This document shows positions 3,415-59,879 of a stretch of 64,000 bases of DNA, in pieces (the stretch's first letter is position 1; every line of letters starts with the position of its first letter). This DNA comes from Anolis carolinensis (Eukaryota). The notes beneath the pieces are model-generated. The model had not been told where the DNA came from. It saw only the letters and a program-made list of their open reading frames with translations, and did not search any database. The DNA is taken from positions 28,751,636 to 28,815,635 of the forward strand of contig NC_085841.1 of NCBI RefSeq assembly GCF_035594765.1. Reading direction: 5' to 3'. A program made the translations under genes and the position numbers.

Positions 3415-3715
3415 AGGTAAAGGCAAAGGTTTTCCCCTGACATTAAGTCTAGTTGTATACAACTCTGGAGGTTGATGCTCATCTCCATTTTTAAGCTGAA
3501 GAGCCGGCATTGTCCATAGACACCTCCAAGGTCATGTGGCTGGCATGACTGCATGGAACGCTGTTACCTTCCCGCCGGACTGGTACCTATTGATCTACTC
3601 ACATTTGCATATTTTGAACTGCTAGGCTGGCAGAAGCTGGGGTTAACAGCAGTAGCTCACACCGCTCCCCAGATTCGAACCGCTGACCTTTCGGTCAGCA
3701 AGTTCAGCAGCTCAG
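3415..3715 (-). mobile_element. Sauria SINE, near full length
   Basis: AGGTAAAGG tail on +, conserved body, tRNA-like B box on minus strand. Confidence 0.92.
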
Positions 3716-14883: not shown

Positions 14884-15203
14884 AGGTAAAGGTAAAGGAT
14901 TTCCCCAGACATTAAGTCTAGTCGTGTCCAACTCTGGGGGTTGGTGCTCATCTCCATTTCTAAGCCAAAGAGCCACCATTGTCCATAGACACCTCCAAGG
15001 TCATGTGGCCGGCATGACTGTATGGAGCACTGTAACTTCCCACAATACCATCTATTGATCTACTCACATTTGCATATTTTCAAACTGCTAGGTTGGCAGA
15101 AGCTGGAACTAACAGCAGGAGCTCACCCCACTCCCTGGATTCAAAACACCGACTTTTTGATCAGCATGTTCAGCAGCTCAGCAGTTTAACCTGCTGTGCC
15201 ACC
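14884..15203 (-). mobile_element. Sauria SINE, full length
   Basis: Complete tail, body and head match to the other copies. Confidence 0.92.
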
Positions 15204-15354
15204 ATACTTTTTAAAAATTCAAATTCATCAAAAACATTAAAATAGTGAGCAGGTCTATAAAGGAAAATAAAGCATAATTACGATTATGCTATCAAACAAG
15301 TGAAATCACTCTTCATTCTCATACAATTATAATATAATCCAGTTATTATGCTTT

Positions 15355-30930: not shown

Positions 30931-30974
30931 TCACCACCTCCTGACAATTGAGAGACAATAGACATTGAAACATT

Positions 30975-31293
30975 GGAGCCCCCAATGGCACAGCAGATTA
31001 AATCACTGAACTGCTAAACTTGCTGATTGAAAGATTGGCAGTTTGAATCCGGGGAGCAGGGTGAGCTCCTGCTGTTAGCTCCAGCTTCTGCCAACCTAGC
31101 AGCTTGAAAACATGTACATGTGAATAGATCAATAGGTTCTGCTTTAGTGGGAAAGTAACAGTGCTGCATGCAATCAGCCACATGACCTTGGAGGTGTCTA
31201 TAGACAGCGCTGGCTCTTCAGCTTAGAAATGCAGATGAGCACCAATCCCCAGAGTCGGACACAACTAGACTTAACGTCAAAAGTAAACTTTTA
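30975..31293 (+). mobile_element. Sauria SINE, full length
   Basis: tRNA-like head, conserved body, CAGAGTCGGACACAACT Bov-B-like end. Confidence 0.9.
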
Positions 31294-32476
31294 TTTTTAC
31301 TAGTCATTGAGAGGCAGTGGCTTATCCCTCTCCCCCCCCCCTCCCCTGAGTTAACTGAGTGTAAAATACTTTTGCACTTTAAATTCAGTTTGAGCCAATG
31401 GAAGTAAGCTGAGGATAAAAGGGGGAAATGGAGGAAGGCAGAGAAACTGGGCCATTTCAAAGCAAGTGAAAAAGTATTAATTGTGACTCTATAAGATGTC
31501 TATAAGATGAGGGTATAAGATGTGTTTCCGGGCATGTAATACTGATCAGTCTTTCAGTGTTGTTTTTCAGCTTATTCAAACAATGGCTGTGGAACTCAAA
31601 ATATCCAGTGCAACTGCTCAGAATTAGTACGTAGTATTAGTAATGTCACTACTTGGTCATCGTGTCTGGAAATGCCTTGGTGACCACAGGCAAAAATATT
31701 ACACAGGCTTTCTAGCAGATTGTGAGCCAACCAGATCCCCATACAAACATAAGAATTTACTTAAAGGCTGCCCTAGTTTTAAGCAGCTAGTCACCATTTT
31801 GAAATTCAAAGTAATCCCATTTCCTGAAGGAATGCAATAGCCTGAAATGGGAAATTTTAAAAGAAAATCAAAAGGGAGTTTTCCTCCTGATTGAGGAAAT
31901 AACTAACAGGTGCCCTTCTCTTGCCCCAGCAAGTGTCTGCAAGATCTGCTTCTCCTAAAGAAAATAGGGTTTATGCTCTGAAATCCCATAATCACAATAA
32001 TACACCACCATGTGACTTTAAAACATAAGACAATTGTTAAAGCCATATTTCAAGCTAAGAAACTGCATGCTGTGCGTTATGCCTAAGAGAAAGCAGTTGT
32101 CTTTTTCAGAGAAACATTTCCCCAGTGGTTCTTGAATGTGAATCATAATGTATGAACTTGGCAGATAAATGTTTATTGCTGGGAATATTACATGTACTAC
32201 ATCAAGAAAAACTGTATTTTTTACAGCCAGAATAATTCCATGGAAGCTTAGTCAGATGCTAGTTCATCAAATTCAGTAGGATGCATGCTTAAACAGTGTT
32301 TGAAACAGAGATGGAGAATTTAATTCAGTTCTTTGTTTAATAAGTATTTACCACATTTGTTGAATCAATCTCCAAAGTGGAATGCAGAAGGTATCCTTCT
32401 GCATTTATTTCCACACTTCAGAATATTTAACATGCTTATATATATATCAAAAATCCCACTTCTGTATCAAAAGGTA

Positions 32477-32625
32477 NNNNNNNNNNNNNNNNNNNNNNNN
32501 NNNNNNNNNNNNNNNNNNNNNNNNNNNNNNNNNNNNNNNNNNNNNNNNNNNNNNNNNNNNNNNNNNNNNNNNNNNNNNNNNNNNNNNNNNNNNNNNNNNN
32601 NNNNNNNNNNNNNNNNNNNNNNNNN
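32477..32625. other. Assembly gap (149 N)
   Basis: Run of N. Confidence 1.
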
Positions 32626-32789
32626 TGCATAAAATAGCAATACATCAACTAATACTGCTAGGGCACTAAAATGAATTCATTTCTTCTAGGTTCTTCACAA
32701 CTTCTAAGTTGCAAATTAATGGAAACAAACAATGAAGTAAATATAAGATATTAAAAATGAAACCCAGATAAAACTCAAAACTGAAGCAG

Positions 32790-37445: not shown

Positions 37446-37761
37446 AGTAAAGGTAAAGGTTTCTGCTTGACATTAGGTCTAGTCGAGTACGATTCTGAGG
37501 GTTGGTGCACATCTCCATTTTTAAGCCAAAGAGCCAGCATTGTCCGTAGACATCTCGTAGGTCATGTGACCAATATGACTGCATGGAATGCCGTTACCTT
37601 CCTGCTGAAGTGGTACCTATTGATCTACTCACATGTGCATGTTTTTGAACTGCTAGGTTAGCAGAAGTTGGGGCTAACAATGGAAACTCACAGATTCGAA
37701 CTGCTGACCTGATTCGAATTTTGCAGCTTACTGGTTTAACCTGCTGTGCCACCACAGCCCC
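37446..37761 (-). mobile_element. Sauria SINE nested in CR1
   Basis: Full family match; degenerate TSD GGGGCATGATA / GGGGACATGACA. Confidence 0.9.
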
Positions 37762-37850
37762 TTATGGGGACATGACAGCCATGTTCACATATTTGAAAAG
37801 ATGTCTCATTGAGGAGAGGTCAAGGTTTTTTCTGCTGTTCTGGAGACTAG

Positions 37851-39720: not shown

Positions 39721-40820
39721 AAGTAGTTTGATGGAAAACTTTACTATGTACATGGTGTTTAGGTTACACTTATAATATGTTCTTGGTCTAAAGATGAAGC
39801 AGGGAGATCTGCACTATGGTTTACCTAGATTTTAATTTTATTTTTTCCCTTCCACTGCTCTGTGGTTTAATGAAAGCTGAGCTGTCAGCCATCTCCTTCA
39901 TTTCATGCTGACAGCCCAGACCTTCCTTTCCTCAGTTCTATTTGATGTAGAATTTATATCAGCCACATGGGGAAAGAAGGAGAAGCTTCAACCGCTGGCT
40001 TTAATCTCCATGAGAAAGGAAAGGTGAAGATAGGGCAGTAAGGAGCACGGAAAGTCCATATATAAACTATGCTGCTTATTATAAGGTCCACCCTCAAGGG
40101 GTTTCAAAGATTAACTGCATCTCTTGTTTTCATTCTCTGTCTTACTCACTTTTTCTTTCTCACACGCAGATTTCTTTCCTGCTATGATAAATCCCCACTG
40201 TTCATTTATAGGCATCTGGTTTCCACACAGGAAACGCTTGCCATAATTATACGAAAATAAACTCACCATTCAGTTGTTGTTGTTGTTGTTTTTAAAAAAT
40301 GTATTTCAAATTAACAAAACTAGGAAAAATAAAGGGCGGATGGGAGAGAGTGCCCCGTCTCATTTGCCAAGGAGAACTGAAAAACCTGGTTGTGTATTTA
40401 GCCTGTCAGAGTGGTATTTTTCCAAACCTATCATGTCCCAGCTCAGCTTCAGGGACATAAAGAAAACATAGCAGGAGTTCTGAATTTTAACAAGAGCAAA
40501 ATCATTCCTTCCAGCCAAAAAAAAAAAGAAGAAGAAGAAGCAACTTGGGAGCTAAAAATAAAAACAAGCACCAAGTTTTTGGGGAATATAATTTTAATAA
40601 TGAGGCCTATTAGAGCAAATTAAAATTATTGTATTAGATAAGGTTGGAAACAAGCCTGCATAGTCATAATTGCATTGTAAGACACAAGAGTAAAAACCAA
40701 AATAAGTAACAAGTCAGAACAAATAAGATTAACCTTAAATATCATTTTAAACTGGAAAAGTCATGAAACAGAGAGAGCAGATCTAGAGAGAGGGTACATC
40801 TATACAGCAGAATTAATGTT

Positions 40821-41037
40821 GTGAGAAAATTGGCCGTCTGCAAGAACATTGCCCAGGGGGTGCCCAGATGTTTTAATGTTTTACCATCTTTGTGGGAGGC
40901 ATCTCTCATGTCTCCGCACAGGGAGCTGGAGCTTACAGAGGGAGCTCACCAGCTCTCCCTGGATTCTAACTGCTGACCTGTTGGTCAGCAGTCCTGCCGG
41001 CACAAGAGTTTAACCCATTGCACCATCAGGTGCTCCC
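40821..41037 (-). mobile_element. Vingi-tail SINE family copy lacking the tail
   Basis: Homologous to 1595-1873; stops just after the HDV-like body. Confidence 0.85.
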
Positions 41038-47612: not shown

Positions 47613-48198
47613 ATGCAATAAGTTATGTTTTGCAATAGGTTATGGGATGTCCAATAGAAGGCAATCTCATCATAAAGATTTACCTGATTCTTCATGTGGA
47701 TCAAAACAGGAAACAACAACAAATGACACAACATATAGCATCAGTTACAAGAGCATATAAAACCAACACATATTACAATTCATCAATAAATACTTTAAAA
47801 ACTATAATCTAAAAACAATCTGGGCAGCCTTGATCTTTGCTGCTTAAAATAATCTGTGTAGGCACTGGTCTTTAGTGCTGATTTAAATACAGACAGTGCT
47901 TTGAAAGCTCTTCCAGCAAGTTGTTCTGCTGTCCAGGGGCAGCTAAAGAAAATGTCCTCTGGGTAGCAGTCAGCCAAGTTTCTGCTGAGTGACATAGCTG
48001 TCTCCCAGAAAACCTGAGTGCGCATTCAGTCCCCTTCTAGTCTCCAAACACGCATCCAATATTATGCTCTGGATATAGTCCAGAGCATAATATTCCATAT
48101 AGTACCCTGCTGTAGAAAGGAACACAGTTCAGATTTTAAAAATATATATAAACAAAAGGAAGCCTGTGCCAGAACTCTGTATCTCACAAGATTTAATT

Positions 48199-48304
48199 GG
48201 AGCCCCTGGTGGCACAATGGGTTAAACCATTGTGCCAGCAAGACTACTGATTTGAAGGTTGGGTTTCTGACCTGAAGGTTGCTGGTTTGAATCCGACCCG
48301 GGGA
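48199..48304 (+). mobile_element. Head-only fragment of the Vingi-tail SINE family
   Basis: Matches the heads of the 1595 and 50264 copies. Confidence 0.8.
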
Positions 48305-48361: not shown

Positions 48362-48535
48362 GAGCCAGAACGGTGTCATGATTTGAGCACTGGACTATGA
48401 CTCTAGAGACCACGGTTCAAATTGGCCACAAAACCGATGGATGACCCTGGGCAAGTCACACACTCCCAGCCCCAGAAAACTCTGTGGTTTGGTTGCCATG
48501 AATCAGAAATGACTTGAAAGTCTTCAATAACACAA
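48362..48535 (+). mobile_element. Old CORE/MIR-like SINE
   Basis: GGTTCAAAT B box, TGACCCTGGGCAAGTCAC CORE motif, GACTTGAA tail. Confidence 0.7.
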
Positions 48536-50263: not shown

Positions 50264-50546
50264 TTTTTTGTGTGTCAGGAGCAACTTGAGAAACTGCTTC
50301 TGGTGTGAGAGAATTGGCCATCTGCAAGGACATTGCCCAGGGGAGACCCAGATGTTTTGATGTTTTTACCATCCTTGTGGGAGGCTCCTCTCATGTCCCC
50401 ACATGGAGCTGGAGCTGATAGAGGAAGCTCATCCGCAGTCTCCCCAGGTTGGATTCAAACTGGCAACCTTCAGGTCAGGAACCCAACCTTCAAGTCAGCA
50501 GTCCTGCTGGCACAAGGGTTTAACCCACTGCACAACTGAAGACTCC
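50264..50546 (-). mobile_element. Vingi-tail SINE, full length
   Basis: Head, HDV-like body (50307-50401) and GCTCCTGACACACAAAAAA tail on minus strand. Confidence 0.88.
50307..50401 (-). ncRNA. HDV-like ribozyme fold inside the SINE body (activity unknown)
   Basis: P1 GGGGAC/..TCCCCT, P2 GAGAG(G/A)A/TTCTCTC, P3 GCC/GG(T/C), GG then GCAA, P4 GTC/GA(T/C), J4/2 GGCCAA in HDV order. Confidence 0.65.
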
Positions 50547-52270: not shown

Positions 52271-52574
52271 GTAAAGGTAAAGGTTTTCCCCTGACATTAA
52301 GTCTAGTCGTCTCCAACTCTGAGGGTTGGTGCTCATCTCCGTTTCTAAGCCGAAGAGCCGGCATTGTCTGTAGACACCTCCAAGGTCATGTGGCCGGCAT
52401 GACTGCATAGAGTGCCATTACCTTCCCGCAGAAACAGTACCTATTGATCTACTCACATTTACATGTTTGCAAACTGCTAGGTTGGCAGAAGATGAGGCTA
52501 ATAGTGGGAGCTCACTCTGCTCCCCGGATTCAAACTGCCGACCTTTCGGTCAGCAAGTTCAGCAGCTCAGCAGT
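52271..52574 (-). mobile_element. Sauria SINE, near full length
   Basis: Family match. Confidence 0.92.
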
Positions 52575-55282: not shown

Positions 55283-56761
55283 ACCCAGCAAGTCCTATCT
55301 ATTCTCAGTTTCCTCATACTAGAATGAATGTAGGACACTAAAAAGGAACCCTCTTCCAATACACAGATACACACATTTTGAGATCAAATATCCAATGGTT
55401 GTATAGAAAATGGAATTTCATCAGGTGTTCCTTGTTACCTGGTATTATGACAAGCAATGCCTGATGGAAATTTCTCTTCGTCAATGATATTAAAGGTCCA
55501 AGAGCCATCTCCAGTTTTCAGTATTTCAATCCTATTTGAACAGAAGGCTGAGGTAGCACATAGGACACCTGGGGTGCATCTACACTGTAGAATTAATGCA
55601 GTTTGATACCACTTTAATTGCTATGTCTCAAAGATCATGGGATGTGTTGTTTGGTGACACCCCAGCACTATTTTGCAGTGAAGGCTAAAGAAATTGTAAA
55701 TCCCCATGATTATATTTGTCCTTGAGTATGTGTAGTCAATAGATTTTCTCCACTGCTGCAAAGAAAATTGCTGGCTGAAATGTCCATTATGCTTAGTCAA
55801 AAACAATTTGATCCTGAGATGGCTTAGAGCAGAGTAAAACGTAACCTGTCAATCTTTCTGTTAGCAAAGCTGAAGATAAAACTTTAGGCCATGCTGTTAC
55901 AAAAAACATAGGCCTCACTTGGATGTTACCTAATACCTAGTAGGTGACACTATCAATGTTATGCAGCCCTTCCTGAATGCAGTGATGGCTGGTGAGTCCA
56001 TAGGGTGGTGAATTCTTTCAAGGTGTTGAACCTATAATGGCATGTGGCTCAGTTTAAAGTATGGTGAAAAATCTGGAGCAGATTCACTGATCCACTGGCA
56101 GGGAGCCACCACTGCTTCTGTGATCTAAATCTTTCCAAAGATGTAATTTGCAAAAATTTGATTCAAATCCTCCAGTGGGGAAATGGAACAAACTGTAGTG
56201 GTGTAACCCTGAGCAACAGCAGCAGCACCCACTGCTGGAAGCAGATTATCCCATTCTTGGAAGCAAAGGGCCCAATAAAAACAGAACTCTGTTGGCCTTA
56301 AACCTATCGGGACAATCTCCCTCGGCTGGATTGCAAGAAAAGCAAGCTCTTTGTAAGGCTTCCCGCCAACTTGCCTTGCCTCACACAAAGACTCATTCCC
56401 TTTGAAATTAATTAACTTCAGTGGTCTCCAAACATGGCCCTGCTTCTTCCCCACCCACTGCGCAAAACTTCGAGAGTCTTAATTTCACTGTAAATAAACA
56501 GGCGGAAATCGCTCTTTAATAAGAACGGGAGCTGGAGCTGTCACTCAGCAAGAAGCTCCCCTCATTCTTAGGCAGATGCCTGACTTCACACACACACACA
56601 CAGAGAAAGGGGGGGGGAGGGAGAGAGAGGGAGGGGGGAATGAATCAACCTATTGACTTTCAAAGGAGAGTTTAGTTTCAAGACAATAAGGAGCAAGACT
56701 GAGGCGTAACCACTATCTATCTAGGTTAAGACACTTAATGCCGTATTCATAGAAATTTATG

Positions 56762-57037
56762 TTTTGTCGTGTCAGGACTTGAGAAACTGCAAATCACTTT
56801 TGATGTGAGAGAATTGGCCATTTACAAGGACATTGGCCAAGGGATGCCCAGATGTTTTTGATGTTTTACCATCCTTGTGGAGGCTACTCTCATGTCCCTG
56901 CATGGAGCTGGAGCTGATAGAGGAAGCTCGTCTGTGCTCTCCCTGGGTTGGATTCATACCGGCAACCTTGAGGTCAGCAATCCAACCTTCAAGTCATCAA
57001 TCCTGCTGGCACAACGTCTTAACCCACTGCACCACCA
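56762..57037 (-). mobile_element. Vingi-tail SINE, near full length
   Basis: Family match to 50264-50546. Confidence 0.87.
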
Positions 57038-57719
57038 GTATGCAAAAATATGACTTTCTACCACTGACTTCCTTACATCAAGTAAAATTCCTAGCAAACA
57101 TCAAGGCAGAACATTTCTTGTGAATACTGTAATTTATACTGTTCTACCTCCTCCCACTACCATTCCATTATGAAAGAATTGCAGTAAAATTCAATCATAG
57201 GTACTATCAGGTTCTGTATATAGGGTAAGGGAGGGATCACTATGTTATCCTATACCACAAGCAGCAAAATATCTTGAGATATAGAACTGTAAGGCTAGGC
57301 TTAGACAGATGCATGTTTTAACATGGTTTGATGCTGCCTGGGGGTATCTAGGCACATCAGTAATGATGTCCTGCTTCTTATTTTCTACCCAGTTTTTGAC
57401 CAACTGGGTCTTTGGGAGGTTCTTGGGGTTGGTGGGTTCTGGAAGGCTAAAAATGCCAAACCACCACATTTGGGACATAAAGGTTTGGGTTAGTGCCAAG
57501 GGGCTGCAGGGACCATGAAAGTAGGATTTGAGAGGTGCTGGTTGCCAGAACTGGTTATGCCCCAGATGATATCCATAAGTGCCAGTTGAAACTACTGTGC
57601 TCCTCCATCACCTTCTCTGGGCATGAAAGGTGCAAGAAGTCCCTGCTGAAAGCATCAGCTCGGAAGCTCACATGGCATTTGTTGGAAATAGCAACCTCCC
57701 AAGCCTTTCACTATACATT

Positions 57720-59557: not shown

Positions 59558-59679
59558 CATTTGCATGTTTTCAAACTGCTAGGTTGGCAGAAGCTGAGGC
59601 TAACAGCTCCCTGGATTCAAACCGCCAACCTTTTGGTCAGCAAGTTCAGCGGCTCAGTGGTTTAACCCCCTGCACCACC
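59558..59679 (-). mobile_element. Sauria SINE 5' half (no tail)
   Basis: Family match. Confidence 0.82.
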
Positions 59680-59879
59680 ATCAGGTACTAAACATTCCAT
59701 TTGAGATGTTTCTACTGTTTAGGATATCTTGAATCATCTAGGTACTCATCAACTTTTTGACACTTATACAGAAAACCCATACAATTTGAATGCCTCTCTG
59801 AAATGAGTGAATGAGACAGCTAGTCACAAGAACACAGTGAGGGCCTTTTAAAGATCACACCAAAGGCTTATAGCTAGAC

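Follow-up and report, generated by a model that had tools for sequence, protein, structure and literature searches.

A SINE family of Anolis carolinensis whose body has the fold of an HDV-like ribozyme without its cleavage-site pair, a probable capture from a Vingi LINE

Introduction

Two facts about non-LTR retroposons are known already: the bodies of short interspersed elements (SINEs) can come from the 5' ends of Vingi long interspersed elements (LINEs), and ribozymes resembling that of hepatitis delta virus (HDV) stand at LINE 5' ends and in non-autonomous derivatives of LINEs. In the green anole, two SINEs, SINE2-1_ACar and SINE2-1B_ACar, are similar to Vingi-2_ACar, in their middle region to its 5' end and in their 3' region to its 3' end (Kojima 2018, citing Kojima 2011), and in the alligator, positions 61-127 of SINE2-1_AMi match positions 2-74 of Vingi-2_Gav (Kojima 2018). 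Here we analyse a SINE family found in 64,000 nucleotides of Anolis carolinensis DNA (assembly GCF_035594765.1, contig NC_085841.1, positions 28,751,636 to 28,815,635; hereafter the window, with positions counted from its first letter). It is very probably the SINE2-1_ACar/SINE2-1B_ACar family, as Kojima's published description matches it.

HDV-like ribozymes are active at the 5' ends of Ingi-clade LINEs and of their non-autonomous derivatives; an earlier note on the window, made from its letters without database searches, had given this as established, in agreement with the literature. The published list of ribozyme-bearing LINE clades comprises R2, RTE, LOA, R1, R4 and Ingi, and Vingi is not included (Kojima 2018). 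One review remarks briefly that hammerhead or HDV-like ribozymes are used by certain SINEs. In the literature, we found no description of an HDV-like fold or ribozyme in Vingi elements or in the present SINE. The fate of a ribozyme within a SINE was raised by Kojima as a theoretical constraint on SINE birth, and self-cleavage there would lead to 5' truncation (Kojima 2018).

We propose that the body of the anole SINE is probably a captured Vingi 5' module with an HDV/R2-type ribozyme fold, in which self-cleavage would be lost or strongly reduced. Judging from the sequences, the fold is well supported, and the view that it is disarmed is plausible.

Results

Four copies and a genome-wide consensus

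Searching with nhmmer and a model built from the four copies, we found one SINE family carrying this body, with four copies in the window. Aligned to the consensus core, the four bodies span precisely the positions that the earlier note had given them:

1729-1820, + strand: ribozyme-like core of subfamily B, within SINE 1591-1877; 71/95 positions as in the consensus
40823-40916, - strand: core copy, within SINE 40796-41035; 84/95 as in the consensus; three P1 pairs broken
50307-50401, - strand: core copy, nhmmer SINE match 50549-50261; 88/95 as in the consensus
56807-56900, - strand: core copy, within SINE 56760-57039; 83/95 as in the consensus

These copies, named below by their first position, are CpG-decayed, non-functional relics. 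All four cores are 7-25% diverged from the consensus, with broken pairs in each, and the intact fold is present only at the consensus level: no window copy has the whole of it. In copy 56807, one C of L3 is deleted and the G of J1/4 has become C. Copy 1729 has a short loop on the hairpin of L3 and six inserted bases (ATGTGG) after the GG of P1.1 (1783-1790, + strand), an insertion that would disrupt J1/4.

A genome-wide consensus was derived by aligning Logan contigs, taken from four public runs on the organism, to copy 50307 at a likeness of at least 80% (5-32 thousand contigs per run). The majority differed from copy 50307 at seven sites only, six by CpG-decay transitions and one, 50345, by a transversion at a CpG site. 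On the SINE strand, these are:

50401: T>C, 63%
50387: G>A, 99%
50350: T>C, 66%
50346: T>C, 83%
50345: C>G, 74%, or A, 26%
50332: T>C, 52%
50320: T>C, 58%

In the rest of the fold, no further position varied at 8% or more. From the position called '+1' onwards, the consensus reads C GGGGAC AT GAGAGAA GCC TCCCACAA [GGATG..CATCC] G GGC GTCCCC T GG GCAA CGTC CTTGCA GACG GCCAA TTCTCTC. The observed/expected ratio of CpG in the window is 0.21, and restoring CpGs is therefore justified; the consensus that the earlier note had restored by eye in this way matches the contig-derived majority letter for letter.

The predicted helices of the consensus stand in the order of the HDV ribozyme

The elements of the fold, placed on copy 50307 (all on the - strand), are as follows:

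50401, - strand: '+1' position, facing the U at 50339; this copy has T; genome-wide C in 63%, T in most of the remainder and G in less than 8%
50395-50400, - strand: P1 5' strand, GGGGAC; no variant at 8% or more genome-wide
50386-50392, - strand: P2 5' strand, consensus GAGAGAA; this copy has G at 50387
50383-50385, - strand: P3 5' strand, GCC
50375-50382, - strand: 5' part of L3, as in the consensus above; the CC at 50381-50380 are the P1.1 partners
50350-50374, - strand: additional L3 hairpin, stem GGATG/CATCC (arms 50374-50370 and 50354-50350), loop of 15 nt
50346-50348, - strand: P3 3' strand, consensus GGC; GGT in this copy
50340-50345, - strand: P1 3' strand, consensus GTCCCC; CTCCCC in this copy, which breaks the top pair
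50333-50339, - strand: U, GG of P1.1 and GCAA of J1/4; TGGGCAA, the same as in the HDV genomic ribozyme
50319-50332, - strand: P4, consensus CGTC, loop CTTGCA, GACG; in this copy both CpGs have become TG, giving G-U pairs
50314-50318, - strand: J4/2, GCCAA; its C at 50317 occupies the position of the catalytic C, three bases before P2'
50307-50313, - strand: P2 3' strand, TTCTCTC

The earlier note had proposed that these parts follow one another in HDV order, and at the consensus level P1, P2, P3, the GG of P1.1, P4 and the C of J4/2 indeed come in the canonical sequence. The genome-wide consensus has all the pairings of the double pseudoknot of HDV-like ribozymes: P1 has 6 bp, P2 7 bp (8 with a flanking T-A), P3 3 bp, the L3 hairpin 5 bp, P1.1 2 bp and P4 4 bp; L3 opens with UCC, and P1' directly adjoins P3'. 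In the four copies, 83% of the pair cells are standard when the partners are in register, versus 38-52% when they are slid by 1-3 columns. The cells of P1.1 are paired in all cases (100%), and the C of J4/2 is invariant (4/4), its catalytic role being predicted from its position.

Segments were then compared by hand with the HDV genomic ribozyme, taken from the supplement of bioRxiv 10.1101/025023. The junction string CTGGGCAAC, which the earlier note had given as an HDV sequence, does occur in it, and about 24 of 30 junction and core letters are identical. The two share both P3 strands (GCC/GGC), the TCC at the start of L3, U-GG-GCAA after P1, the C-G pair closing P4, and the G-C-x-A-A of J4/2 (GCCAA in the SINE, GCGAA in HDV). 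Both strands are changed, and complementarity is kept, at three pairs of P1, almost all of P2 and two pairs of P4. A largely identical core together with compensated changes in the helices is the pattern expected of a shared fold.

Chance expectation

The likeness to HDV could be a coincidence: its source would be a structured LINE 5' untranslated region (UTR) that never was a ribozyme, in the LINE or in the SINE. We evaluated how often such a structure arises by chance with a structure-only descriptor (P1 of 6 bp, P2 of at least 6 bp, P3 of 3 bp, CC/GG for P1.1, P4 of at least 3 bp, a C three bases before P2', L3 of 6-45 nt and '+1' left free). The consensus passes it, and 3 matches were obtained in 12.8 Mb (100 dinucleotide shuffles, both strands), about 1 per 4 Mb; the real window gave 0 matches. 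At this rate, a relaxed descriptor would find hundreds of fortuitous matches in a gigabase-sized genome, which favours coincidence. Against it, the match is found at the consensus of a repeat family and lies exactly at the boundary of a module derived from a LINE 5' end, the clade is sister to one with proven 5' HDV-like ribozymes, and the agreement of junction letters with HDV comes in addition to the structural match. A coincidence therefore seems to us very improbable.

Pattern scans of metagenome and viral contigs were used solely as an empirical null. The core letters of a broader pattern occurred by chance in 90 metagenome stretches; a full P1 was present in one of them (1/90), and P2 there had 5 bp. 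The family-specific pattern gave 0 matches in the metagenome contigs. A pattern scan of viral contigs for relatives gave 16 matches, all of them due to chance and lying in phage genes.

Observations that weigh against the fold and its origin

Several results speak against a ribozyme fold of LINE origin, and some of them also favour a coincidence. First, no match to the HDV families of Rfam (HDV_ribozyme, CPEB3, drz) was found, either in the window at the gathering score or in stretches of 99, 104 and 401 bases with E up to 10. We do not read this as absence, because the queries were decayed copies and the insert in L3 is heavily penalised.

Second, the nested minimum free energy of copy 50307 was unremarkable, no better than that of shuffled sequences (z = +1.2); this score is uninformative because the fold is a pseudoknot. 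For the consensus, the nested HDV-like half (P1, P3, hairpin and P4) reaches -21.1 kcal/mol; the P2 duplex contributes about -7.8 more, and P1.1 would contribute as well. The best nested alternative reaches -27.6 kcal/mol, using a competing helix of 8 bp. The pseudoknot is energetically competitive, yet thermodynamics alone is no proof of it. The competing helix pairs CAAGGATG with CGTCCTTG, that is, the 5' arm of the L3 hairpin with the P4 region (consensus of 50323-50377, - strand). We estimate that a stretch of 95 nt would contain about 0.3 helices of this kind by chance; the helix may be fortuitous, or it may serve as a conformational switch of the sort described for L1Tc.

Third, covariation, which the earlier note had suggested as a check, revealed nothing informative in the four copies, no more than neutral decay. 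Such a lack of signal is expected, because the copies decay neutrally. Fourth, the window is without a Vingi LINE, so the derivation from a LINE ribozyme, and a G at '+1' of the LINE, would rest on the literature: none of the 35 submitted window open reading frames (ORFs) of at least 90 aa has a reverse transcriptase or endonuclease domain, and no Vingi ORF is present in the window.

The last point is the atypical insert in L3. The L3 of HDV-like ribozymes is usually compact, about 7-8 nt, with a U...G reverse wobble and the P1.1 cytosines. The consensus has UCC at the start of L3 and a G before P3', and a hairpin is inserted between them. As the earlier note had described, this is a stem of 5 bp (GGATG/CATCC), standing between the first 8 bases of L3 and the single G before P3'. 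Among tested HDV-like ribozymes, we know of none whose L3 contains a 25-base hairpin next to the active site. The stem recurs in subfamily B, represented by copy 1729 and by the loose-end consensus at 50344, where its loop is 6 nt long; in subfamily A, the 15-nt loop looks as if about 8 bases had been duplicated.

The fold starts at the edge of an exchanged module

The layout of copy 50307, and the positions of a second SINE family in the window, are:

50264-50546, - strand: whole SINE copy, consisting of a tRNA-like head, a linker, the ribozyme-like body and a Vingi-type tail ending in an A run; from nhmmer, with limits from loose ends at 50527-50533 and 50264
50441-50546, - strand: tRNA-derived head, from the loose-end consensus
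50402-50440, - strand: linker common to the second SINE family, ..GAGCT.CC...AGCTCCAGCT, then 2-6 bases before the fold; from the alignment of both families
50264-50306, - strand: Vingi-type 3' tail, its 5' arm deleted in part; loose ends at 50295-50297
15099-15206 (-), 30974-31088 (+), 52489-52574 (-), 3633-3703 (-), 37664-37764 (-) and 59592-59681 (-): copies of the second SINE family

The six other SINE copies share the head and linker and have a different body. This second family, the more numerous one, is shared up to ..CCAGCT and then continues with TCTGCCAACCTAGCAG...GTGAGTAGATCAATAGGT... A common head and linker with different bodies indicates that heads and bodies have been exchanged as modules in this genome. 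In the alignment, the similarity of the two families stops at ..CCAGCT, upstream of TGC-GGGGAC and 2-6 bases before GGGGAC. This places the start of the fold at the 5' edge of the family-specific module, a position expected if the captured RNA started at the cleavage site of a ribozyme. Whereas a retrotransposon ribozyme stands at the start of its element, the fold in the SINE begins about 145 bases inside.

The earlier note had proposed that a tRNA-derived head captured a bipartite Vingi RNA. The literature, the architecture and the module boundary all support this part of its proposal, and the capture is already Kojima's published hypothesis (2011, 2018).

The cleavage-site pair

In HDV-like ribozymes, the '+1' base is normally a G in a wobble pair. 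The earlier note had reported that it is C, C, T and C in the four copies, which our alignment confirmed, and G is correspondingly rare genome-wide. In the register with seven P1 positions, U is faced by C, or by T where the C has decayed, and a G stands at -1. Mutations of this pair are costly in related ribozymes: in CPEB3, G1A lowers the cleaved fraction from 92% to 3%, and activity is very low in an L1Tc-clade ribozyme with a C1-A39 mismatch. A G is the worst -1 base for HDV (PMC1874588). The earlier note had proposed that cleavage was muted while the fold was kept, as cutting would sever the RNA polymerase III promoter, and Kojima (2018) reasons along the same lines on 5' truncation. It is plausible, from the sequence, that loss of the cleavage-site pair has abolished or strongly reduced self-cleavage of the SINE RNA, since the SINE master appears to have kept all helices and core bases except this pair.

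The rival view is that the SINE version is a working ribozyme, which cuts either 5' of the first G of GGGGAC, having then a P1 of 6 bp with a G-C base pair, or else in a slipped register made of one G-U and three G-C pairs. Headless body-and-tail RNAs with a 5'-OH would result, and the SINE would survive through slow cutting or through competing folds of its RNA polymerase III (Pol III) transcript. Three observations that caution against taking the loss of cleavage as settled also lend this view credit. Active ribozymes of the L1Tc/ingi clade have C at '+1', paired with G, so that a G there is not obligatory. The P1 stems of R2 ribozymes are typically 6-7 bp long, a quarter of them with mismatches, and one is active with a P1 of 4 nt. 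And GGGG opposite CCCCU does permit the slipped register. Moreover, the remaining core elements are all intact in the consensus, and the SINE-like elements of Schistosoma are a precedent for Pol III elements with an active ribozyme. However, although either register could supply the missing pair, the geometry beside P1.1 is abnormal in both, with an extra unpaired U or with 4 pairs only, and loss of the G-U pair is, as said, strongly deleterious in CPEB3.

Copies starting at the predicted cut site also bear on this view. Taking the best-supported loose ends in run X1, we counted about 750 contigs that stop at the 5' end of the SINE, and found no cluster of loose ends at the predicted cut site; on this rough reading, made on contigs only, headless copies are not a major class. 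We thus consider a working ribozyme in the SINE unlikely, and retain the loss or strong reduction of cleavage as the better account.

Head, tail and neighbouring sequences

The two promoter-like boxes of the head of copy 50307 are:

50534-50524, - strand: A-box-like TTGTGCAGTGG; genome-wide form GGTGGCGCAGTGGG
50461-50451, - strand: B-box-like AGTTTGAATCC; genome-wide form GTTCGAATCC

Both GGTGGCGCAGTGGG and GGTTCGAATCC were found in the copies and in the loose-end consensus, as expected of the A and B boxes of a tRNA-derived head. ARAGORN called no tRNA, and for this reason we describe the head as tRNA-derived, and not as a tRNA gene. In copy 40823, 20 bases of the head (40960-40985, - strand) are missing, namely one of two tandem ..CTGACC.GAAGGTTG.. 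units. Both units are seen in the other three copies, so that the head exists with and without the duplication. A fragment consisting of the head alone, from the same SINE family, lies at 48197-48302 (+ strand); it has the duplicated anticodon-arm segment and ends after the B box. After it, at about 48370-48480 (+ strand), comes another SINE-like sequence, which has a CORE/MIR-like motif (..CCCTGGGCAAGTCACA..).

Tails are present in three copies, each with an A-ended tail:

50264-50306, - strand: tail of copy 50307
56760-56806, - strand: tail of copy 56807
1821-1877, + strand: tail of copy 1729

Copy 40823 has no tail, and nhmmer found no tail-only copies in the window. The family consensus of the tail, in which the stem was read by eye from the loose-end consensi, has a stem of 8 bp, GCGACTTG/CAAGTCGC, around CAGTTTCT, followed by ..CTCCTGACACGAAAAAA. 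A 3' stem-loop of this sort is the kind recognised by the reverse transcriptase of the partner LINE. In copy 50307, most of the 5' arm of the stem was lost through a deletion.

Elsewhere in the window, a run of 149 N at 32477-32625 is an assembly gap or masked sequence, and the ORFs 32333-32632 and 32382-32669, which cross it, are meaningless.

Discussion

A ribozyme trapped in a Pol III transcript

We propose that the 95-base body is the 5'-terminal module of a Vingi LINE, made of an HDV/R2-type double-pseudoknot ribozyme with an additional hairpin in L3. In the parent LINE, the fold would be a 5'-terminal ribozyme that cleaves itself, as the architecture, the clade relationship and the module boundary suggest. 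There it would free the element RNA from an upstream transcript at its first base, and it may also cap the 5' end, protect it or help its translation. The SINE would have been born, in line with the hypothesis of Kojima, when a tRNA-derived head and its linker were joined to a bipartite Vingi RNA made of 5' and 3' parts. From then on, the module would lie about 145 bases into a Pol III transcript, and cutting would part the promoter-bearing head from the body and tail. A variant without the cleavage-site pair may have been favoured, because only RNAs keeping both head and tail could found active copies. The resulting SINE master would have retained every helix and core base except this pair, with C-U in the place of G-U. 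The rest of the fold may be intact through selection, or merely because the SINE is young.

A stronger form of this proposal is that the ribozyme was disarmed as such: the change from G to C at the cleavage site was selected in the Pol III SINE so that the promoter-bearing head stayed attached, and the rest of the fold, with its lineage-specific L3 hairpin, was kept because the Vingi machinery recognises or needs it, as an exapted structural role. We hold this only tentatively, and think it rather unlikely.

A neighbouring explanation, which overlaps with the one we favour and is not exclusive of it, is that the fold is catalytically dead in the SINE and was selected as a structural module acting in cis for the Vingi machinery, by protecting the 5' end, by binding a protein or by pairing with the tail. 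Bipartite non-autonomous derivatives of Vingi, Ingi, RTE and R2 retain both 5' and 3' ends, engineered Vingi-1 donor RNAs are built with both UTRs, and HDV-like folds have been proposed to protect 5' ends and to aid translation. The stem of the L3 hairpin is kept in both SINE subfamilies though the loops differ, which also points in this direction. On the other hand, an intact consensus may reflect only recent capture, and the solo cases (SINE2-1_AMi; Kojima) indicate that tails are exchangeable, so the dependence of the 5' and 3' parts on each other is not strict. Selection for such a structural role is in our view doubtful. The reading that we prefer remains that of a captured Vingi 5' module in which cleavage was probably lost or reduced.

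Should the fold prove real, the LINE clades listed as having ribozymes would gain a vertebrate one, whose variant tolerates a hairpin next to the active site. The fold would also be a natural experiment, in which a self-cutting RNA was trapped in a transcript that must stay whole. There is a practical side too: the 5' UTR of green anole Vingi-1 is in use in gene-insertion platforms, and, given a real fold, its folding and self-cutting would be of practical weight there.

Comparison with known systems

With HDV/R2-type ribozymes, the SINE body shares the order P1-J1/2-P2-P3-L3-P3'-P1'-P1.1-J1/4-P4-J4/2-P2', and its P1 of 6-7 bp is within the range of R2. It differs in having no pair at all at the base of P1 in the 7-position register, in the hairpin inserted in L3 (25 bases in subfamily A, 16 bases in subfamily B), and in that no Rfam model recognises it.

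The Pr77 ribozymes of the L1Tc/ingi clade, carried also by NARTc, RIME and SIDER, belong to the lineage sister to Vingi. They too have C at '+1', and in them an HDV-like fold at the first bases of the element was passed on to short non-autonomous derivatives, some of them inactive. In contrast to the SINE, C1 is there in a Watson-Crick pair with G, the core letters are far from those of HDV and R2, and the ribozyme is terminal and not placed behind a Pol III head.

The SINE-like elements of Schistosoma, which carry a hammerhead, are similar in combining a short Pol III retroposon with a self-cleaving motif, and face the same conflict between cutting and promoter. Their ribozyme is however of another class; it is active, processes multimers and does not come from a LINE 5' end.

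SINE2-1_ACar and SINE2-1B_ACar of Anolis share a tRNA-derived head, a middle from the Vingi 5' end, a Vingi 3' tail and two subfamilies, and the alligator SINE2-1_AMi shares the tRNA-derived head and the Vingi 5'-derived middle. The papers on these three elements report sequence similarity only and describe no fold.

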